Shown here piece by piece: positions 1 to 7,045 of a stretch of DNA of 64,000 nucleotides. The notes under the pieces are model-generated. The model had not been told where the DNA came from. It saw only the letters and a list, made by a program, of their open reading frames with translations, and did not search any database. Each line of letters starts with the position of its first letter. Positions within the stretch are counted from its first letter, which is position 1. The DNA is taken from sequence record PQ066597.1; one strand, 5' to 3'. Made by a program: the position numbers and the translations under genes.

Positions 1-1
1 T

Positions 2-145
2 ACTCCTTTCTATGAGATAGAAACCCCGGAAAACATGGATGTGATGAAAGAACTTGTTCAGACCATGAAATCCCATAGTTCTTCTGGTGGAGCACAGATG
101 GAAGCTCTTGTCAAGAAATTTATGTTGAAAGCTAACAAAGTTTAA
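2..145 (+). CDS. 3' end of hypothetical protein (starts before window)
   Basis: Open frame from base 2 to TAA at 143-145 (TPFYEIETPENMDVMKEL...ANKV*). Confidence 0.6.
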   Translation, partial: TPFYEIETPENMDVMKELVQTMKSHSSSGGAQMEALVKKFMLKANKV

Positions 146-147
146 AA

Positions 148-180
148 TTAAAAACCGGAGATTATAGTGTTATAATCTCC
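148..180 (+). promoter_or_regulatory. sigma70-type promoter overlapped by a palindrome
   Basis: TTAAAA-N17-TATAAT with extended TGn; GGAGATTATA (157-166)/TATAATCTCC (171-180) inverted repeat. Confidence 0.55.
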
Positions 181-206
181 TTATAAAATAACAAAAGGAA
201 AGATAA

Positions 207-431
207 ATGATTTTTATTGCTGATATTGTGGATCCGTCTGAATTTGGTGGTGCGTCTCGTACCGTTATTGACACCAAACTGATCAAAGGTCTCTCTGAGA
301 AGAACGGTGTTTCTTATATCACCTTTGATGTTCGTGGAACCGATAAGCAAAAAACGATTGCAGTCCATCAGGATTTCGAAGCAATTTTCTCATATATGCA
401 GTTTGATGAACGGATCAAACTTAGCCAGTAA
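207..431 (+). CDS. hypothetical protein
   Basis: ORF track; AAGGA RBS upstream; followed by terminator. Confidence 0.75.
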   Translation: MIFIADIVDPSEFGGASRTVIDTKLIKGLSEKNGVSYITFDVRGTDKQKTIAVHQDFEAIFSYMQFDERIKLSQ

Positions 432-442
432 AACGTATTAAC

Positions 443-475
443 ACCCCTAGCGATTTTCGTTAGGGGTTTATTTTT
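443..475 (+). terminator. rho-independent terminator
   Basis: ACCCCTA/TAGGGGT stem followed by T tract. Confidence 0.7.
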
Positions 476-488
476 GATAGGATGGTTT

Positions 489-626
489 ATGAAAGTAGTT
501 CTTAAAAATGGTCAAGAAATCGAAGCGAAAGATGTAGTAAAATCAAAATACGATCACCTTGTTGTTACTGAACGTGTTGCATTTTGGATTGATAACAAAG
601 AAATCAAAACCGTGGTTTGGTGGTGA
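489..626 (+). CDS. small hypothetical protein (45 aa)
   Basis: MKVVLKNGQEIEAKDVV...VVWW*; GGATGG RBS; abuts next ATG. Confidence 0.55.
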   Translation: MKVVLKNGQEIEAKDVVKSKYDHLVVTERVAFWIDNKEIKTVVWW

Positions 627-627
627 T

Positions 628-1617
628 ATGGGTAGTTTTAATACTGTTTGTTCTGTTAGTCGTCAAATCGTTCAAGGTGGTGATAAAGTTCGCTTGATCC
701 CAGTTGCTGGTAAACACTGTATTAGTGCTTTCCCACTTACTGCGGTGTATGACGATTATGGTGAGTTTGACATTGATGATAATCTTGCGTTAGAATGCTT
801 AATGAAAAACGTATCCATGTTTAACGATGGTGTCTCTAAAGAGAACTTAGCCCATGGATTTTATCCATACGATGAAAATCGTTGGACAATCCCAGACCTA
901 TGGAGCAAAACAAAATACGAGACTTCTTTTATTGTAGTAAAGTCTGATGTATACGATCTCGTTTCGGAGTTTGGTATTACTTGTTGGTGGGAGAAACCTG
1001 TATACGACGTTTCTGATGCAGATGACTGGCTACCGGTAACACCGGAACGAGTCGCTAGACATCTTAAAACTCTCCAAGAAAGACTGAAAGAGTTGGTCGA
1101 AGATAGTGAAGACCCAGAAGATGATATCCTTGTGAATCATGTTAAGATCATGATTGATAATGTTCATATTGGTAATGCAAAACATTATGAACTTAGCAGA
1201 TTGATTAAAACTCAAGATCAGATTAATGATTATGCTCATCACGACGATACAACTTATGCAATCTTCAAAAATATTGAAGAATTTGCAAAATTAGAAAATT
1301 TTTATGCTGGTTGTAATAACTTGGATATTGTGCTAACATCACAGGAATATGGTCGTCAGACATGCAAGCAGTTTGAAAAGGTTCGTATGATGACAAAAAT
1401 CCAGATTGTTGGGTTTAACCAAACAGAAAAAATTCAGTTGACTCCGGTTGAATGGGATGTTAAGATTCCTTACTCTATGGTTGTGGAATCAACTAAACCA
1501 AATTGGTCAAATGAAGTTGATTTGATTCGAGTTGGTGACTGTCTTGAAATTACGGACTCTAAATACAATGAGTTCAAAGAGTATAAGCACGATGATGTTT
1601 ATCTGAGTGAGAAATGA
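628..1617 (+). CDS. hypothetical protein
   Basis: ORF track 559-1617; likelier start ATG 628 (MGSFNTVCSVS), directly after the stop of the upstream ORF. Confidence 0.75.
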   Translation: MGSFNTVCSVSRQIVQGGDKVRLIPVAGKHCISAFPLTAVYDDYGEFDIDDNLALECLMKNVSMFNDGVSKENLAHGFYPYDENRWTIPDLWSKTKYETSFIVVKSDVYDLVSEFGITCWWEKPVYDVSDADDWLPVTPERVARHLKTLQERLKELVEDSEDPEDDILVNHVKIMIDNVHIGNAKHYELSRLIKTQDQINDYAHHDDTTYAIFKNIEEFAKLENFYAGCNNLDIVLTSQEYGRQTCKQFEKVRMMTKIQIVGFNQTEKIQLTPVEWDVKIPYSMVVESTKPNWSNEVDLIRVGDCLEITDSKYNEFKEYKHDDVYLSEK

Positions 1618-1861
1618 TATTATGTTTTTAGAAACAGAAAAAGTAAATTGTGCGGGAAGAATATACCCGCTAGATATCGCAAACCAAATATGTTCTGTTC
1701 AGCCTATAGACCCAGAGCCATTTCGAAAACTATATGAGCGGGCTAAAGAGAACGAACGTATTAAGATTCGGCTTTCTAAAGCTTTTATGGTCCCGGTATC
1801 AAGGATCGACGCATACTGTGTAGAAGCATATCGACTTGGTATAAAAGAAAATAAAAGTTAA
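1607..1861 (+). CDS. hypothetical protein, N-x-x-GRIYP motif reminiscent of prohead protease N-terminus
   Basis: EKVNCAGRIYP motif; function not supported. Confidence 0.55.
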   Translation: MRNDIMFLETEKVNCAGRIYPLDIANQICSVQPIDPEPFRKLYERAKENERIKIRLSKAFMVPVSRIDAYCVEAYRLGIKENKS

Positions 1862-1898
1862 ACATCCTTTCTAACTGTGATATGATGTTTATATAAAT
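1849..1898 (+). promoter_or_regulatory. tRNA promoter, copy 1 of a 50-bp perfect direct repeat
   Basis: TTAAAC-N17-TATGAT with TGn, then TATAAAT; identical to 3010-3059. Confidence 0.8.
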
Positions 1899-1900
1899 GA

Positions 1901-1993
1901 GCGTGAGTGGCGAAGTTGGTTGAAACGCATCGGACTTAAAATCCGATACTGCATAATGGCACATCGTGGGTTCGATTCCCACCTCACGCACCA
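1901..1993 (+). tRNA. trnL: tRNA-Leu (TAA)
   Basis: GCGTGAG/CTCACGC acceptor, TCGGA-cTTAAAa-TCCGA anticodon arm, long variable arm, TTCGATT T-loop, CCA. Confidence 0.95.
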
Positions 1994-2082
1994 AAATACG
2001 AGATGATAAACTCAAATTCCTTTTTGTTGAATGAGCTTTTTGGACGTTAAACGAGTTTATCATCTCACAAATTCAATATGAG

Positions 2083-2229
2083 ATGCTTAATATGAACGTA
2101 TATATCAGAAATTACATGTGTGGAGTCCTTTGGGGTAGTATCTTCAACGAAGATCACTGTAAAGGTAAATTTGTAAAGATTATGCGTGGTAAACATTTGA
2201 AGCCTTTCTATCAAAAATCGAGATATTAA
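2083..2229 (+). CDS. small hypothetical protein (48 aa)
   Basis: Open frame MLNMNVYIRNY...SRY* abutting next ATG; below ORF-track cutoff. Confidence 0.4.
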   Translation: MLNMNVYIRNYMCGVLWGSIFNEDHCKGKFVKIMRGKHLKPFYQKSRY

Positions 2230-2230
2230 A

Positions 2231-2620
2231 ATGAAAGTGAAGCTTGGGGCCTATAACCTTAATGAAAAAAGTTCATTGGTTAATACGAATGGTGTAAAAT
2301 TCATTTTGAATGAACAAGTTATAGATGAGTTTTCTAAAAAACTACCTATTCTAATCAATTTTGGTCAAAAATGTTTTAACATCGATAATGTCAGAGATAC
2401 ACCAGACCCGGTTGGTATTCTAAATTCCATAGAAACTTACAAGAAAGATAATATCATTATTGTTACTGGTGATATAGAAATAACCAATGACAAAGTGTAT
2501 GATGTTCATGGATGCCTTCCTTCTTTTTGTGTTCGGTCTCTGGCTAATGGTGACGGTGATACTTATAAAGTTATCGAGATCGTTGCGTGGGATATGGAAA
2601 TATATGAAGGTTTATCATGA
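2231..2620 (+). CDS. hypothetical protein, possible degenerate prohead-protease-like fold
   Basis: ORF track; N-x-NG and VRSL-x-NG...V-x-EIVAWD patterns. Confidence 0.6.
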   Translation: MKVKLGAYNLNEKSSLVNTNGVKFILNEQVIDEFSKKLPILINFGQKCFNIDNVRDTPDPVGILNSIETYKKDNIIIVTGDIEITNDKVYDVHGCLPSFCVRSLANGDGDTYKVIEIVAWDMEIYEGLS

Positions 2621-3015
2621 ATAAACATGATATTCATCTCATTGGTATTAGTAAGTTTATAAAGAAAGGTCTTACTGTGGTTCAATCAAGTTTGATCTTC
2701 AAACAAACCAGTGAAGAATGGAAAAATATCCATGATGTTGATGTAGACAAGATTTATTGCTATATTAACAACGAGGGAAAGGATATCTACGCAATTGGTA
2801 GACTAAAATCCTGTTGCGGACCTTGGTTGAGTGTTAGTTGTCGGTCTCTCCGTAAAAAAGGTTATATAGCATTTGACTTTAACGATGAAATTGAGATACC
2901 ATATGGTTCAGGGATGAAAACTGCTTATAGGGTATTGTTTTCTGACACCCCTAAATACGAGTATGATGAAGAAGCTAGACATCCAGTCGCTTACTTCGAA
3001 AAATACTTCAAATAA
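2617..3015 (+). CDS. hypothetical protein
   Basis: ORF track; ATGA overlap with upstream ORF. Confidence 0.7.
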   Translation: MNKHDIHLIGISKFIKKGLTVVQSSLIFKQTSEEWKNIHDVDVDKIYCYINNEGKDIYAIGRLKSCCGPWLSVSCRSLRKKGYIAFDFNDEIEIPYGSGMKTAYRVLFSDTPKYEYDEEARHPVAYFEKYFK

Positions 3016-3059
3016 AAGTTAAACATCCTTTCTAACTGTGATATGATGTTTATATAAAT
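3010..3059 (+). promoter_or_regulatory. tRNA promoter, copy 2 of the 50-bp direct repeat
   Basis: Identical to 1849-1898; immediately upstream of tRNA-Arg. Confidence 0.8.
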
Positions 3060-3060
3060 T

Positions 3061-3137
3061 GCGCTGTTAGCTCAGTTGGATAGAGCAACGTTCTTCTAAA
3101 GCGTGGGTCACTGGTTCGAATCCAGTACGGCGCACCA
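3061..3137 (+). tRNA. trnR: tRNA-Arg (TCT)
   Basis: Cloverleaf, loop CT-TCT-AA, TTCGAAT, CCA. Confidence 0.95.
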
Positions 3138-3221
3138 CGGGATGTGGTGAAATTGGCAGACACACTAGATTTAGGTTCTAGCGCCATAGGCGTGACGGTT
3201 CGAGTCCGTCCATCCCGACCA
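3138..3221 (+). tRNA. trnL: tRNA-Leu (TAG)
   Basis: CGGGATG/CATCCCG acceptor, CTAGA-TTTAGGT-TCTAG, variable arm, CCA. Confidence 0.95.
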
Positions 3222-3222
3222 A

Positions 3223-3298
3223 GCGGGTAAGGTGTTTATGGATACATGCAAGCCTTCCAAGTTTGAGTAGACCGGATCGTTACCGGCTACCCGCTCCA
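3223..3298 (+). tRNA. trnG: tRNA-Gly (TCC), atypical T-loop
   Basis: GCGGGTA/TACCCGC acceptor, loop CT-TCC-AA, T-loop ATCGTTA, CCA. Confidence 0.85.
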
Positions 3299-3309
3299 AG
3301 ATTTAAAAT

Positions 3310-3379
3310 TGATGTGTTACAGCTATCAGCTCACCGTTGAAAGAATACGGATAAGTCGGCTCGACTAAAGAACATATCA
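3310..3379 (+). ncRNA. candidate ~70-nt structured RNA between tRNA-Gly and tRNA-Ile
   Basis: TGATGTGTT/AACATATCA closing stem with two inner hairpins (CCGT/ACGG, AGTCG/CGACT). Confidence 0.45.
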
Positions 3380-3382
3380 TTT

Positions 3383-3459
3383 GGCCCCTTAGCTCAGTAG
3401 GTTAGAGCAGCCGACTCATAATCGGTTGGTCACTGGTTCGAGTCCAGTAGGGGCCACCA
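3383..3459 (+). tRNA. trnI: tRNA-Ile2 (CAT, lysidine type)
   Basis: GGCCCCT/AGGGGCC acceptor and body closely resembling enterobacterial ileX; anticodon CAT; CCA. Confidence 0.85.
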
Positions 3460-3481
3460 AATTTTTGATGAGAGCTATATT

Positions 3482-3676
3482 ATGTCTGGTATAAAATCCA
3501 TAATTGAAAATTGGTCAGTTGGTGATGGTATAATCCACTGGAAAAATGGACGCCATAGTTTAGTAGTCTTTGGGTTTGCTCCAAATGGAGAACCTGCCTT
3601 TAAGTTTAAAGGTAAGAATAAACTTACGTCAGTAAGACAGATTGAAAAATCCATAGTTAATGCATATATTCTATAG
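3482..3676 (+). CDS. hypothetical protein within tRNA cluster
   Basis: ORF track; GATGAG RBS-like sequence upstream. Confidence 0.6.
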   Translation: MSGIKSIIENWSVGDGIIHWKNGRHSLVVFGFAPNGEPAFKFKGKNKLTSVRQIEKSIVNAYIL

Positions 3677-3836
3677 TCGTAAGCTCTCACTAATTTAATG
3701 GTCGTTGACCTTACGATAATAATGAAGCGATACAGAGTCCCATCGCTTCTAAAAATATCAAAAGGGATGTTGATGCGCGTATGTAGCCGGGTTATAATGA
3801 CCAAGATTCATGAAGGGTGAAAGACCACCCTAAATA
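3677..3836 (+). ncRNA. candidate structured RNA
   Basis: Stems TCGTAAG/CTTACGA, GAAGCGAT/ATCGCTTC, AGGGTG/CACCCT; ends at CTAAATA (3830-3836). Confidence 0.35.
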
Positions 3837-3841
3837 TTCAT

Positions 3842-3919
3842 AGCGGGGTGGAGAAGTCAGGAGTTCTCACCAGACTCATTATCTGGAAATCGGTGGTTCA
3901 AATCCACCCCCCGCTTCCA
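3842..3919 (+). tRNA. trnM: tRNA-Met (CAT), initiator-like body with atypical anticodon arm
   Basis: AGCGGGG/CCCCGCT acceptor, CCAGA-CTCATTA-TCTGG, TTCAAAT, CCA. Confidence 0.85.
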
Positions 3920-3920
3920 A

Positions 3921-3997
3921 TGGCGTGTAACTCAGTAGGTTAGAGTGGCGGACTGTTAATCCGTATGTCGTGGGTTCGAATCCCACCTCGCCAGCCA
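3921..3997 (+). tRNA. trnN: tRNA-Asn (GTT)
   Basis: Cloverleaf, loop CT-GTT-AA, CCA. Confidence 0.95.
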
Positions 3998-4003
3998 AAT
4001 TCT

Positions 4004-4094
4004 GGATGTTCGGCTACGATGGCGGTGTAGCGGCGGACTGTAAATCCGTTCCCTCTGGGTAAACAAGTTGGTTCGAATCCAACAACATCCACCA
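4004..4094 (+). tRNA. trnY: tRNA-Tyr (GTA)
   Basis: GGATGTT/AACATCC acceptor, loop CT-GTA-AA, long variable arm, CCA. Confidence 0.95.
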
Positions 4095-4101
4095 AATAGA
4101 A

Positions 4102-4246
4102 GAAGTTAGAAGACGTTCTGATAAAATCCTCGGAGACGATGCCCCCTTGCGGTTTTAAACCGTTACGGATAAGCACGGGGTAATCCAAATCAACCATTAT
4201 AGGGATGTGGTCATCTGGTATGTAAAATACAGTTGATTTGGAACTT
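4102..4246 (+). ncRNA. candidate ~145-nt structured RNA
   Basis: AAGTT/AACTT closure, perfect TCCAAATCAAC/GTTGATTTGGA stem, CCCC/GGGG stem enclosing CGGTTTTAAACCG. Confidence 0.5.
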
Positions 4247-4248
4247 TT

Positions 4249-4324
4249 CGGTGATTAGCGCAGTTGGTAGCGCGTCTGGTTTGGGACCAGAGGGTCACAG
4301 GTTCGAGTCCTGTATCACCGACCA
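4249..4324 (+). tRNA. trnP: tRNA-Pro (TGG)
   Basis: CGGTGAT/ATCACCG acceptor, loop TT-TGG-GA, CCA. Confidence 0.95.
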
Positions 4325-4337
4325 CTTAGCACAAAGA

Positions 4338-4599
4338 ACGGGTAACGACGTATGCCCCGGAATAAGCCAGCCATAGAGAATCTGGATATCCTGAAACGTG
4401 CCTTTAGGTTTCAGGCGGGATTGGTAGTACAAAGACGATATGGTAACTACCCCTTGACAAGCAGGGTTGAACTTGAGGTAACTGTCCTTTACCAAACAAC
4501 GAACAGATGGACAAAATCGGTTGAACGTCCTTCCTCGATATGATAGCATGTCAACCACATTAGGATATAATCACAGTCTAACGATCCTGATTATAATCC
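4338..4599 (+). ncRNA. candidate ~260-nt structured RNA
   Basis: Five or more hairpins: CCTGAAAC/GTTTCAGG, GGTAGT/ACTACC, CCCT/AGGG, GGTTGA/TCAACC, GGATATAATCA/TGATTATAATCC. Confidence 0.45.
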
Positions 4600-4602
4600 G
4601 CT

Positions 4603-4678
4603 GCCGAATTAGCTCATCTGGTAGAGCACAGCCTTTGTAACGCTGGGGTGGTCCGTTCGAGTCGGACATTCGGCACCA
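4603..4678 (+). tRNA. trnT: tRNA-Thr (TGT)
   Basis: GCCGAAT/ATTCGGC acceptor, loop TT-TGT-AA, CCA; C.C mismatch at base of anticodon loop. Confidence 0.9.
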
Positions 4679-4684
4679 AATTTT

Positions 4685-5165
4685 GGATTCTCGTCAATAG
4701 TCCGGTCTATGAGAATCGACGCTTTAAGTAGCCCACCGGTATTTGTAAAAAATCTAGTGAAAGCTAGAAAATAAAAACCGAACCCCGACCTCTCCCATTA
4801 CTCGAATGGTGATGTAGGTTCCTTCCCTGTAATAAGGTTCTAGTCCGTGACGGGTAAAAGGTTACATAGGGAGTATTGCTTGTGAATGACCACTGATTCA
4901 AGCCATCACATAAGCGCGTCCGTTATGACGTTAAATATAAGGCTTAGATTCCCATAAGGGCCTAAGCGTAAAAGTAACGAGCAAGACCGTTTTGCAGGCG
5001 TAGCCCATTGGGGTGATGATGTTTGTATGTTGGGCTCGGATAGCCAATGCTATTAAGTCCGGTGATGGTGCGACCGGATCGATTTACGGAACCACATCAA
5101 CAAGTATGTGCCTTGGTGGTTCGACCTGCTTTGCAGCCGCACATGAAGCTAAAACTTAAAAAGAG
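4685..5165 (+). ncRNA. candidate large ornate ncRNA (~480 nt)
   Basis: No ORF >=60 aa in the track; more than 10 local hairpins, long-range TTTAAGT-AGC/GCT-ACTTAAA and CATCAC/GTGATG helices, pseudoknot. Confidence 0.65.
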
Positions 5166-5302
5166 AGGTTGTATATGTCACCGCTAAACGCAAGCCGTTA
5201 GGACGTAAAGGTAAAAATAGTGTTTTTGTAAATGGTTATACCAATAATGGTATTCCGGTTTTATGTAATGTATTTTATCAGTTTGAAACAAATGGTATTC
5301 CA

Positions 5303-5497
5303 TTGGATATTCTGATAGAGAAATTTTATAATTCCGGTTATATTATTGATTGGGTTTCTTTCGTTAATGATGCTTTCAAGATCGGATGGAAGAAAGAAAC
5401 TGTAATAAAAAAGATAAAGTATGCATTTGATGATATTGAGATAAATGATTCAAATGAAATACTAAACCGTGTGATTAAATACATAGAAAGCCTGTAA
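5303..5497 (+). CDS. hypothetical protein (YQFETNGIPLD motif); true start probably upstream
   Basis: Frame open from 5153; RBS+ATG at 5175 is out of frame (see findings). Confidence 0.6.
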   Translation: MDILIEKFYNSGYIIDWVSFVNDAFKIGWKKETVIKKIKYAFDDIEINDSNEILNRVIKYIESL

Positions 5498-5507
5498 GGA
5501 ATGATAT

Positions 5508-5759
5508 ATGGGTAAGACATTTCGTCGTAAAAATGAAAAACATCTGGACAGTTGGTATGGTGATGAACTTAAAGTGAATCGGGATCTGGGAGATAAATAT
5601 CCTAGTTATCCAGAATCGGGTGTCAAAGATCGTTATAATACATTGAGTCGTCAGCGAGATCGTAAATTGAAACATGATATCATGCACGGTAATCACGATG
5701 TTTTTGTTGATGATGATTACGAAATGAAAAAGGCTAACGCCGGTTATCAATATAGTTAA
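5508..5759 (+). CDS. T4-like hypothetical protein (MGKT-x-RRK...YQYS)
   Basis: AAGGA RBS; N- and C-terminal patterns recalled from a T4-type hypothetical family. Confidence 0.7.
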   Translation: MGKTFRRKNEKHLDSWYGDELKVNRDLGDKYPSYPESGVKDRYNTLSRQRDRKLKHDIMHGNHDVFVDDDYEMKKANAGYQYS

Positions 5760-5768
5760 GATTTTAAA

Positions 5769-6010
5769 GTGTACGCGCCCCAAGAGTGGCGCAGCGGCGT
5801 CAAACAATACGAGTCAAGGGTAAAGGTGATACCCTGTATTGTCACTAGACGAAAAGAGACCATATTGCCTCGATTATGGTCCCCGTTTTAAAGAGGGTGG
5901 TGTGACCTACCACTATCACAAGGTTGTTGTCTGACACCAAAGACAACGTTCGGCAACGGGGACTTTATCTTGCTTTGACTGGCTTGATATAGTCCCCGTT
6001 TTTCTTTTTA
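5769..6010 (+). ncRNA. structured element with terminator/antiterminator architecture
   Basis: Multiple hairpins; AACGGGGAC (5956-5964) can pair with GTCCCCGTT at either 5879-5887 or 5993-6001 (the latter followed by a T tract). Confidence 0.6.
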
Positions 6011-6027
6011 TTAACGGAGAATTTGAT

Positions 6028-6213
6028 ATGTTGACTGGAATTTTTATTGTGTATTTGATTGGTGTTCTGGTATTCATTACCGCATTTGGGATTACCGATC
6101 ATCAAGACCGAGAAGAGGATAGGACCCCTACTTTTAAAGAAGTTATGGATTATCTTTCTGTATCAGCAATTTGGCCCGTTTTGATTGCTATGTCGATTAT
6201 TCGTAGTCTTTAA
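6028..6213 (+). CDS. small membrane protein
   Basis: Two hydrophobic segments; GGAGA RBS. Confidence 0.7.
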   Translation: MLTGIFIVYLIGVLVFITAFGITDHQDREEDRTPTFKEVMDYLSVSAIWPVLIAMSIIRSL

Positions 6214-6216
6214 TCC

Positions 6217-6223
6217 CTAAATA
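6217..6223 (+). promoter_or_regulatory. late promoter (CTAAATA)
   Basis: Variant of T4 TATAAATA; recurs before late-type genes at 7770, 8664, 9516, 15113(-), 15843(-). Confidence 0.65.
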
Positions 6224-6252
6224 TGTTCATATCAACTATAGGAGAGTTTTAA

Positions 6253-6462
6253 ATGGCTAAGAATATTCATGAGAAAAGTCATGCCCGTGAGGGTCGTGGT
6301 GGTGCCAATGGTGGTAATGAAAAATGGTATAACTCCAAACTGTGGGAAAACGTAGAAGCCAAACAGGTTAGTCTGGATGCAAAGCCGGATGAACTGTTGA
6401 AAGAGAAAGAAGGTGAAGACCTTCGAGCAAAACAGCGTCGTATGTTCGCGATGGCTTATTAA
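6253..6462 (+). CDS. hypothetical protein (late)
   Basis: ORF track; GGAGAG RBS; late promoter upstream. Confidence 0.75.
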   Translation: MAKNIHEKSHAREGRGGANGGNEKWYNSKLWENVEAKQVSLDAKPDELLKEKEGEDLRAKQRRMFAMAY

Positions 6463-6490
6463 AATAAACTAATAAGAAGGTAAAACAGAT

Positions 6491-7045
6491 ATGATGATAT
6501 CGCCAAACAGTTTCTTTAGAGACGAATATGTTAGTATGGTAAACAAAAAATTAAAATTATTTAAAAGTTCCGAATATCTAGACAGGAGTCGATTGATGAT
6601 ATCTCCTGATGCATTCCAACAAGAGTTGGGGACTATATGCTTGGATATGGGAAGACAAACAGGAAAAACATCTGCTGCTATTATGTTGTTAGAAGAACAT
6701 AAAGACGCTTTGTATGTTGTTCACAACCATCCTACTATCAGATCTATATTGTCGGTGGCACCACATTTAAAAGACCAAGTGTTGTCAATTAGCGACTTTG
6801 TTAATAGGTTTTATTCTCGTGGTACATACAATCATGTTATTCATGGAAGTAGGATTGAAAAATATAGTATGATCATTATTGATGAACCTTATTTCACATG
6901 TACCAATGGTCAGAGACAATTCACTAATCGTAGTAGTTGTTCATATCACTTGGATGGTGGTAAACAAATAAATACCACATACGGTCTAATTAGTTATGCC
7001 GCATTCAGGATGGAATCATTAATCGTTAAATTAGGAATGCAATGA
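6491..7045 (+). CDS. P-loop NTPase-like protein
   Basis: Walker A DMGRQTGKTS; Walker B-like IIIDEP. Confidence 0.65.
   Translation: MMISPNSFFRDEYVSMVNKKLKLFKSSEYLDRSRLMISPDAFQQELGTICLDMGRQTGKTSAAIMLLEEHKDALYVVHNHPTIRSILSVAPHLKDQVLSISDFVNRFYSRGTYNHVIHGSRIEKYSMIIIDEPYFTCTNGQRQFTNRSSCSYHLDGGKQINTTYGLISYAAFRMESLIVKLGMQ

Follow-up and report, generated by a model that had tools for sequence, protein, structure and literature searches.

The DNA analyzed here is a stretch of 64,000 nucleotides (nt) from sequence record PQ066597.1, referred to below as the window, and the element in question is the non-tRNA tail of its tRNA gene array, at positions 4679–5175 on the + strand. The 901 bases around this region matched PQ066597 with 100% identity, which is the record of Aeromonas phage vB_AdhaM_G2 (G2), a T4-like phage of the CC2/65 group (Straboviridae, subfamily Emmerichvirinae). 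Among its relatives are the CC2/AS-zj group (Ceceduovirus) and the 65/avDM6/Aswh_1/ZPAH1 group (Ishigurovirus). ARAGORN found ten tRNA genes in the window, all in the + strand, at positions 1901–4678. The last of them in G2, tRNA-Thr(UGU) (4603–4678, +; 55.7 bits with the Rfam tRNA model), delimits the region upstream, and the Shine-Dalgarno sequence GAGAGG with the ATG (5175) of a small gene (5163–5177, +) delimits it downstream. The deposited record contains no annotation from tRNA-Thr up to a coding sequence (CDS) at 5508. Open reading frames (ORFs) within 4679–5175 are short only (no more than 48 amino acids), and in relatives they are broken up by a tRNA gene, which bears out the proposal of a first-pass annotation that about 500 nt after tRNA-Thr are non-coding. 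The G+C content of the region (45–47%) is higher than that of its coding flanks (about 30–38%). The minimum free energy (MFE) fold of its + strand reaches −148.3 kcal/mol (z = −2.85; 1 in 100 shuffled sequences folded as well), and the fold of the − strand has a z of −1.95.

Searches against Rfam returned tRNAs only, in the window at gathering score, in positions 1–6500 at E ≤ 10 and in the loci of six relatives, and the 497 nt of the region searched alone at E ≤ 10 matched no family. Rfam models of small self-cleaving ribozymes, tmRNA, RNase P and Y-RNA-like RNAs had no match in the window or, at E ≤ 10, in positions 1–6500 and in the 497 nt, and ARAGORN did not find a tmRNA in the window. 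The first-pass annotation had stated that the region is not assignable to a known family and is neither tmRNA nor RNase P, and these searches agree with it. The families ROOL and GOLLD, which it had named as candidates to be checked, were not matched either, even at E ≤ 10 with the 497 nt alone. No tRNA or tRNA pseudogene in 4679–5175 was detected by ARAGORN or by the Rfam tRNA model, even at E ≤ 10; the only tRNA relic there is a deletion scar at 5081–5085.

The first-pass annotation had also suggested the collection of homologues. By blastn, about 15 Aeromonas phages contain the stretch in its entirety, and parts of it were matched elsewhere; conserved structure was found among them. Alignments downstream of the last shared tRNA gene indicate that 4679–5175 is probably a chain of small structured RNA modules, each inherited separately, within a tRNA operon, and not one nested RNA. 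The modules are arranged in G2 in the order: hairpin A and linker B, a GNRA hairpin, module C, module D, the scar of tRNA-Trp, and module F. The presence or absence of C, F and tRNA-Trp appeared to be independent among the relatives. Module C is wholly missing from phages 65 and avDM6, and module F, which occurs only in G2, AP1, P19, CC2 and 65, is missing from avDM6, Aswh_1 and ZPAH1. An intact tRNA-Trp(CCA) gene lies exactly between D and F (5081/5082) in AP1, P19, CC2, Aswh_1 and ZPAH1, and alignment with these relatives identifies the scar of G2 (5081–5085, +) as a clean loss of about 80 nt between short ATT repeats. Internally deleted copies of the same gene are present in AS-szw (21 nt gone) and Assk (6 nt gone). 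Thus, tRNA-Trp appears to be decaying in the G2/AS-szw/Assk lineage, with the reservation that the Assk record is labelled 'UNVERIFIED' and may contain assembly errors. As tRNA-Trp is intact between D and F in relatives and deleted in G2, the ancestral layout, to judge from the alignments, would be tRNA-Thr, A, B, C, D, tRNA-Trp, F and the downstream gene. Modules were also duplicated: CC2 carries an insertion of about 130 nt in D (L005, 1471–1640) that copies the first hairpin unit of this module, GGCUUAG..CCUAAGC-GUAAAAG, with a different inner stem (AUCCC/GGGAU) in the duplicated unit.

Module C is a defined motif that is new, had not been described before and is not in Rfam. The consensus structure obtained with RNAalifold from an alignment of 13 sequences (A1) is a three-way junction of roughly 90 nt, the core of which occupies 4784–4871 (+) and scores 122 bits in G2 with our covariance model, R1. 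Its closing helix P0 (CCC/GGG, 4784–4786/4869–4871) encloses helix II (ACCUC/GAUGU, 4788–4792/4811–4815), which is capped by a variable hairpin P1 (CCAUU/AAUGG, 4795–4799/4805–4809), a pyrimidine-rich junction strand AGGUUCCUUCC that is invariant or nearly so, and helix P2 (UGUAAU/GUUACA, 4828–4833/4861–4866). A nearly invariant internal loop, AAGGU opposite UAAAAG, separates P2 from helix P3 (UCU-A-GUC, loop CGU, GAC-GGG; 4839–4841 and 4843–4845/4849–4854). In A1, 96% of the cells were paired, and eight pairs were compensatory, compared with 3.8 ± 1.0 in shuffled alignments (none of 500 reached this number). When the partner strand was moved out of register, only 28–46% of the cells could pair in A1, and 28–48% over all such controls for C. 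Covariation was seen in P0 (CUG/CAG, CCG/CGG, CGA/UCG and CCU/AGG), in helix II (A-U to C-G) and in P3 (GUC/GAC to GAC/GUC to GCC/GGC). In a 17-sequence alignment that included divergent members of the IMG/VR database, 11 of 19 pairs were compensatory and 93.7% of the cells were paired, though this alignment was fitted to R1 and is therefore biased in favor of the model.

Some of the helices of C had been noticed in the first-pass annotation. Its hairpin CCATT/AATGG is P1, for which relatives have CCA-GNRA-TGG, CCTTG/CAAGG or TTATTCA/TGAATAA. The helix that it drew from TCCCT..TAA held in its inner part (TGTAA/TTACA), but not in its outer part (TCCC/GGGA), as GGG at 4869–4871 covaries with CCC at 4784–4786; such an outer extension of P2 was unsupported in the T5-like members, and P0 was supported in its place. 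Two other pairings involving C were rejected. A closing helix of GTGATG (4809–4814) with CATCAC (4904–4909) clashes with the covarying helix II and did not itself covary. The idea, derived from the MFE fold, that CCUCU is a free anti-Shine-Dalgarno-like strand was abandoned too, as this strand covaries with GAUGU inside C and its pairing with the ribosome binding site (RBS) is not conserved.

The distribution of C extends well beyond the relatives of G2. By blastn, a piece of it (4770–4868) was 82–89% identical in unrelated phages: in the T5-like Aeromonas phages AhSzw-1, Akh-2 and AhP_Mru1 (Demerecviridae, Shenzhenvirus), in Ahp1_CNU, in Citrobacter phage Ci1 and Cronobacter phages S13 and LPCS28 (Straboviridae), and in Shewanella phage KASIA. 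R1 found exactly one C per phage, at 79–128 bits, in Emmerichvirinae, Shenzhenvirus, Nanhuvirus-like Citrobacter and Cronobacter phages, Ahp1_CNU and KASIA, that is, in T4-, T5- and siphovirus-like phages; it had no match in T4, the T5 tRNA region, phiAS4, 65, avDM6 or Acinetobacter phage D22. Where the phage is T4-like or T5-like, C is found inside the tRNA array or next to it: Shenzhenvirus has it between tRNA-Glu and tRNA-Ile, Ahp1_CNU between tRNA-Lys and tRNA-Met, and Ci1 and S13 between the gene for lysozyme and their first tRNA-Met. A scan of IMG/VR with a looser pattern added a few divergent members (31–50 bits) in uncultured viral contigs, and blastn with these members found nothing among isolate phages. 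Neither they nor the C of KASIA adjoin a tRNA gene, the nearest being about 3 kb off (in contig L033); they occupy long intergenic gaps adjoining terminase genes, and two of them have DUF723/T5orf172-like ORFs as neighbors. When bacterial and archaeal genomes and metagenomes were scanned with the core pattern, nothing came up but phage-like contigs and a single chance match, so no cellular homologue of C was seen in these collections. The KASIA copy is degenerate and lies in the 425-nt gap between the terminase and portal genes. The terminase large-subunit CDS of this phage (L016, 1–1690) is annotated as three joined pieces with an HNH endonuclease gene inside, and probably contains introns.

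Upstream of C, module A (4686–4717, +) is the hairpin GGAUUCUCG...UAUGAGAAUC, which contains an inner stem, AUAG/CUAU, and is present in one copy per genome. The first-pass annotation was right about its stem, GATTCTC/GAGAATC: compensatory versions occur in phages 65 and avDM6 (GAUUCCC/GGGAAUC, a U-A to C-G change) and in a Shenzhenvirus-like contig, L019 (GAUUUC/GAAAUC). The linker B that follows, GACGCUUUAAGUAGCCC...UAUUUGUAAAAAA (4718–4752, +), is conserved in all seven Emmerichvirinae compared. A hairpin always directly precedes it, a different one in Aswh_1 and ZPAH1. Together, A and B occur once in the 64-kb window and in one place per genome in every relative. In the T5-like contig L019, they are inserted just 3′ of the C core, and they are absent from this spot in AhSzw-1, Akh-2 and L020. 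This shows that T4-like and T5-like phages with Aeromonas hosts in common exchange small RNA modules, and the evidence for modular exchange of these RNAs is new. Contig L019 itself (JBOFFJ010000068.1; 4.9 kb, 23 tRNA genes, a Shenzhenvirus-type C) is labelled as part of a Phocaeicola metagenome-assembled genome, but looks like a fragment of a T5-like Aeromonas phage mis-binned into a genome of Bacteroidota. Between B and C lies a small hairpin, CUAGU-GAAA-GCUAG, with a GNRA loop (4754–4767, +), which has a GGAA loop in CC2 and shows no informative variation in the alignment.

Downstream of its core, C is followed by a 3′ extension specific to Emmerichvirinae (4872–4935, +; fold z = −1.80), which is conserved with little variation and folds into two hairpins, GCUUG..AAU/AUU..CAAGC (4878–4903, +) and GCGUC/GACGU (4916–4931, +). 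Three Acinetobacter phages, Saclayvirus D22 and its relatives, share a 31-nt block of it (4881–4911, GAATGACCACTGATTCAAGCCATC..) at 93.5% identity, and the D22 copy (L027, 1201–1231) is located in a tRNA array between tRNA-Thr and tRNA-Gln. This match is suggestive in view of the common tRNA context, with a borderline E of 0.003. A pistol-like reading of 4916–4980 (a hairpin, an A-rich linker and a pseudoknot CGUUAU/GUAACG) was rejected, as there was no Rfam pistol match, and as the loop of Aswh_1 and ZPAH1 is not complementary, yet GUAACG is invariant.

Module D (4936–5084, +; MFE z = −2.28) consists of four consecutive hairpins in the consensus of an alignment of nine Emmerichvirinae sequences (A2): D1 (4942–4967), D2 (4978–5038), D3 (5039–5054) and D4 (5057–5079), with 99% of the cells paired. 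The 9-bp helix of D2 is kept in two sequence types through three changed pairs, and in D4 a C-G pair is switched to U-A with U.G intermediates. The many G.U pairs of D would be A.C mismatches on the opposite strand, which points to a + strand RNA; those of C and D together fit a + strand RNA only. The four compensatory pairs of D were equalled or exceeded in 42 of 500 shuffled alignments. The comparative support for D in these sequences is modest, because their diversity is low. Among the hairpins listed in the first-pass annotation, GCTTAG/CTAAGC is present and supported by comparison with relatives, TCCGGT/ACCGGA has the counterpart TCTGGT/ACCAGA in relatives, and GCAAGA/TTTTGC competes with a longer covarying helix and was dropped. 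Two others it listed, CTAGT-GAAA-GCTAG and GAACCAC/GTGGTTC, are both present but do not vary. C and D also share a signature, UAAGG-hairpin-GUAAAAG. The 64-kb window has exactly two copies of it, one in C (4833–4860) and one around D1 (4938–4974), against 0.29 occurrences expected, and CC2 has three. Ceceduovirus phages have the signature at D1 as well, but Ishigurovirus has lost or lacks the 5′ half of this copy, so that the signature is only a lead to a shared recognition element.

Module F (5086–5157, +; MFE z = −0.21) contains GAACCAC/GUGGUUC and small hairpins, varies in the loop only, and runs into the RBS of the next gene; it may be the 5′ leader of that gene. The frame opened by the ATG at 5175 stops after eight codons (MSPLNASR*), despite the good Shine-Dalgarno sequence. 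The protein frame conserved in G2, AP1, CC2 and avDM6 (..AKRKPLGRKGKNSVFVNGYTNNGIPVLCNVFYQ..) is the −1 frame, with TTG at 5303 as its first canonical start, and phage 65 has more frame breaks in the same small gene. The arrangement at 5163–5497 could reflect a frameshift, translation from a non-canonical start, or a conserved upstream mini-ORF.

Two further observations concern the arrays themselves. The spacer between tRNA-Pro and tRNA-Thr (4325–4602) has a G+C content of about 47%, is conserved in ZPAH1 and shows an apparent compensatory change (CCUGAAAC/GUUUCAGG versus CCUGUAAU/AUUACAGG); it may be a further structured RNA module, and in phage 65 two small CDS are annotated at the equivalent position. 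ARAGORN found a tRNA with a CUA anticodon (reported as tRNA-Pyl) in the arrays of T5-like Aeromonas phages (L008, 437–511; L019, 334–408), which is possibly an amber suppressor.

The modules could alternatively be cassettes that act at the DNA level or in cis, A and B being of the PeSL/PmSL type and D and F being the 5′ leader of the small downstream gene. PmSLs are cassettes of T4-type phages that consist of a stem-loop and a Mot box (PMC4122927). A and B would in this case drive recombination and restart transcription. Indeed, a hairpin always precedes B, and B contains GCTTTA followed 13 nt on by TATTTG (GCTTTA-N13-TATTTG), like the Mot-box middle promoter of PmSLs (PMC4122927). A and B moved as a unit into the T5-like contig, as such cassettes move between genomes, F adjoins the Shine-Dalgarno sequence, and the MFE fold pairs ACCUCUC (4788–4794) with GAGAGGU at the RBS. 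However, A and B occur once per genome and not as a dispersed repeat, for which reason we rejected them as a dispersed cassette of the PeSL type; they lack a terminator-like U tract and may deviate from the promoter consensus, and no sigma-70-like site was called in 4679–4760. As for the leader, the ACCUCUC strand covaries with GAUGU in helix II, phages 65 and avDM6 have the gene without C, and avDM6 keeps it without F. T5-like phages, one of which carries A and B, are not known to have a MotA homologue, and this too counts against the cassettes, an explanation that we consider unlikely.

The first-pass annotation had read the region as a single nested, ornate RNA of about 480 nt held together by two long-range helices, and a single RNA of about 400–500 nt of this kind would resemble GOLLD, ROOL or RNAX of phage T5. 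The fold of the whole region below that of shuffled sequences (z = −2.85) would suit such an RNA. GOLLD and ROOL often lie beside tRNA genes in phages (PMC5737381), T5 provides a precedent in its 719-nt stable RNAX adjoining tRNA-Arg, and the ancestral spacer between tRNA-Thr and tRNA-Trp, of about 400 nt, could come free as one piece. Both long-range helices nevertheless break in relatives. The strand TTTAAGTAGC (4723–4732), which had been paired with 5148–5160, is unchanged in Aswh_1, ZPAH1 and avDM6, all of which lack the partner; phage 65 has GTTTTTG in place of the partner, and the two strands are separated in AP1, CC2 and P19 by an intact tRNA-Trp gene, which the proposed outer helix would enclose. 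The second helix, CATCAC (4904–4909) with GTGATG (5013–5018), has an altered partner in most relatives: it reads GTGTTTG in AP1, CC2, P19, AS-szw and ZPAH1, with CATCAC kept in all five, and also in 65 and avDM6, both of which lack CATCAC. In the consensus fold, 5013–5021 is part of a local hairpin of D. As neither helix is conserved, the nested architecture is unsupported. Moreover, C and D each have a local consensus fold, GOLLD and ROOL had no match at E ≤ 10, and the modules were independently gained, lost, duplicated, transposed and interrupted, which contradicts a single RNA. We regard it as quite improbable, and since the region does not hold a giant ornate RNA, cryo-electron microscopy of a 480-nt transcript would be a misdirected effort.

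That the region consists of decayed tRNA genes or neutral spacer, with its hairpins being relics or chance, is very hard to believe, as the loss of tRNA-Trp in G2 and its decay in AS-szw and Assk, the different tRNA content of relatives' arrays and the dispensability of C and F in some phages would fit it, but no part of 4679–5175 resembles a tRNA even at E ≤ 10, compensatory changes preserve helices in A, C and D, and the C core has kept its identity across unrelated phage families where its flanks have diverged.

Structured non-tRNA RNAs in phage tRNA operons are a kind of RNA that has long been known. In T4, eight tRNAs and the species I and II RNAs derive from one primary transcript of about 1.75 kb (PMC2330249), and a 2010 review gave the roles of these two species as unknown (PMC3014915). 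The species 1 and 2 RNAs of T4 (rnaC and rnaD) are similar to the modules of G2 in that they are structured non-tRNA RNAs encoded in a tRNA cluster, on the tRNA strand, in a T4-like phage of Straboviridae. T4 rnaC ends with a tRNA-like T-arm (GGGTTCGAATCCC), whereas the G2 modules have no T-arm. A likeness seen by eye (AACCGG..GTCGTC and CCCTCT..CATCAC) did not hold as homology to rnaC or rnaD: nhmmer and R1 did not recover it, and in local alignments z was no more than 2 relative to shuffled sequences. The T5 record (L036; NC_005859, 28–42 kb) lists eight non-tRNA 'stable RNA with unknown functions' in the tRNA region, annotated as RNAI, RNAIII, RNAIV, RNA2H, RNAX (719 nt, beside tRNA-Arg) and the tRNA-like RNA1, RNA2 and RNA3. 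These also lie among tRNA genes, and the T5-like Shenzhenvirus phages carry C in their tRNA arrays. Homology to them was rejected as well, as blastn with a word size of 7 found T-arm-like words only and R1 found nothing in L036; no non-tRNA Rfam family was reached in the T5 tRNA-region stretches searched. GOLLD and ROOL are borne by phages or prophages, often adjoin tRNA genes and have an unknown role (PMC5737381). They are at least 500 nt long with conserved multistem junctions, whereas the modules found here, in phages of Gammaproteobacteria, do not exceed about 150 nt and form a chain without a conserved multi-junction architecture. By analogy, then, the region appears to resemble the stable RNAs of T4 and T5 in kind, without detectable homology.

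Our best guess, drawn from that analogy, is that the modules are processed, stable, protein-binding RNAs. As all tRNA and flanking genes of the locus are in the + strand and no + strand terminator-like site was found in 1500–6500, 4679–5175 would be transcribed together with the tRNAs from upstream promoters. In the ancestral layout, RNase P, cutting at the tRNA that follows, together with trimming of the 3′ end of the tRNA that precedes, would free the spacer between tRNA-Thr and tRNA-Trp (A to D, about 400 nt). The compact C and D would remain as stable small RNAs, in the manner of species 1 and 2 of T4 and the stable RNAs of T5. The junction strand and the internal loop (AAGGU/GUAAAAG) of C would form a surface for protein recognition or tertiary contact: they are near-invariant across phage families next to helices that covary freely, as is to be expected of such a surface. 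C would then act in trans, as a ribonucleoprotein scaffold or a decoy, and not as a passive spacer, a role that we favor with low confidence.

Several points weigh against the interpretation of the region as a chain of such RNAs. The transcription, processing and stability of 4679–5175 are all inferred. None of the modules is essential among these phages, since 65 and avDM6 manage without C, and three phages without F. B and F show no informative covariation, and C folded alone is no more stable than shuffled sequences (z = +0.19), so that the support for C is purely comparative. D and F of G2 may simply be a 5′ leader, the presumed 3′ processing site having gone with tRNA-Trp. Finally, some relatives of C lie far from any tRNA gene, upstream of the terminase region, and tRNA-linked processing is thus not the whole story.

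A bolder proposal is that C is the first member of a new class of functional RNA carried by phages, and that it has spread horizontally among T4-, T5- and siphovirus-like phages of Gammaproteobacteria. Its invariant junction strand and AAGGU/GUAAAAG loop would bind a host or phage protein, with C acting, for instance, as a decoy for a nuclease or defense system of the host, or would form a catalytic or ligand-binding core. We put this forward tentatively, as a proposal with a rather small chance of being correct.

Taken together, these results suggest that the stable non-tRNA RNAs of phage tRNA regions are not peculiar to T4 and T5. The tRNA arrays of Aeromonas phages would hold small structured modules that are traded between unrelated phages with a common host, and module C, with its covariation-supported structure and its covariance model, would provide a concrete handle on the role of such passenger RNAs.

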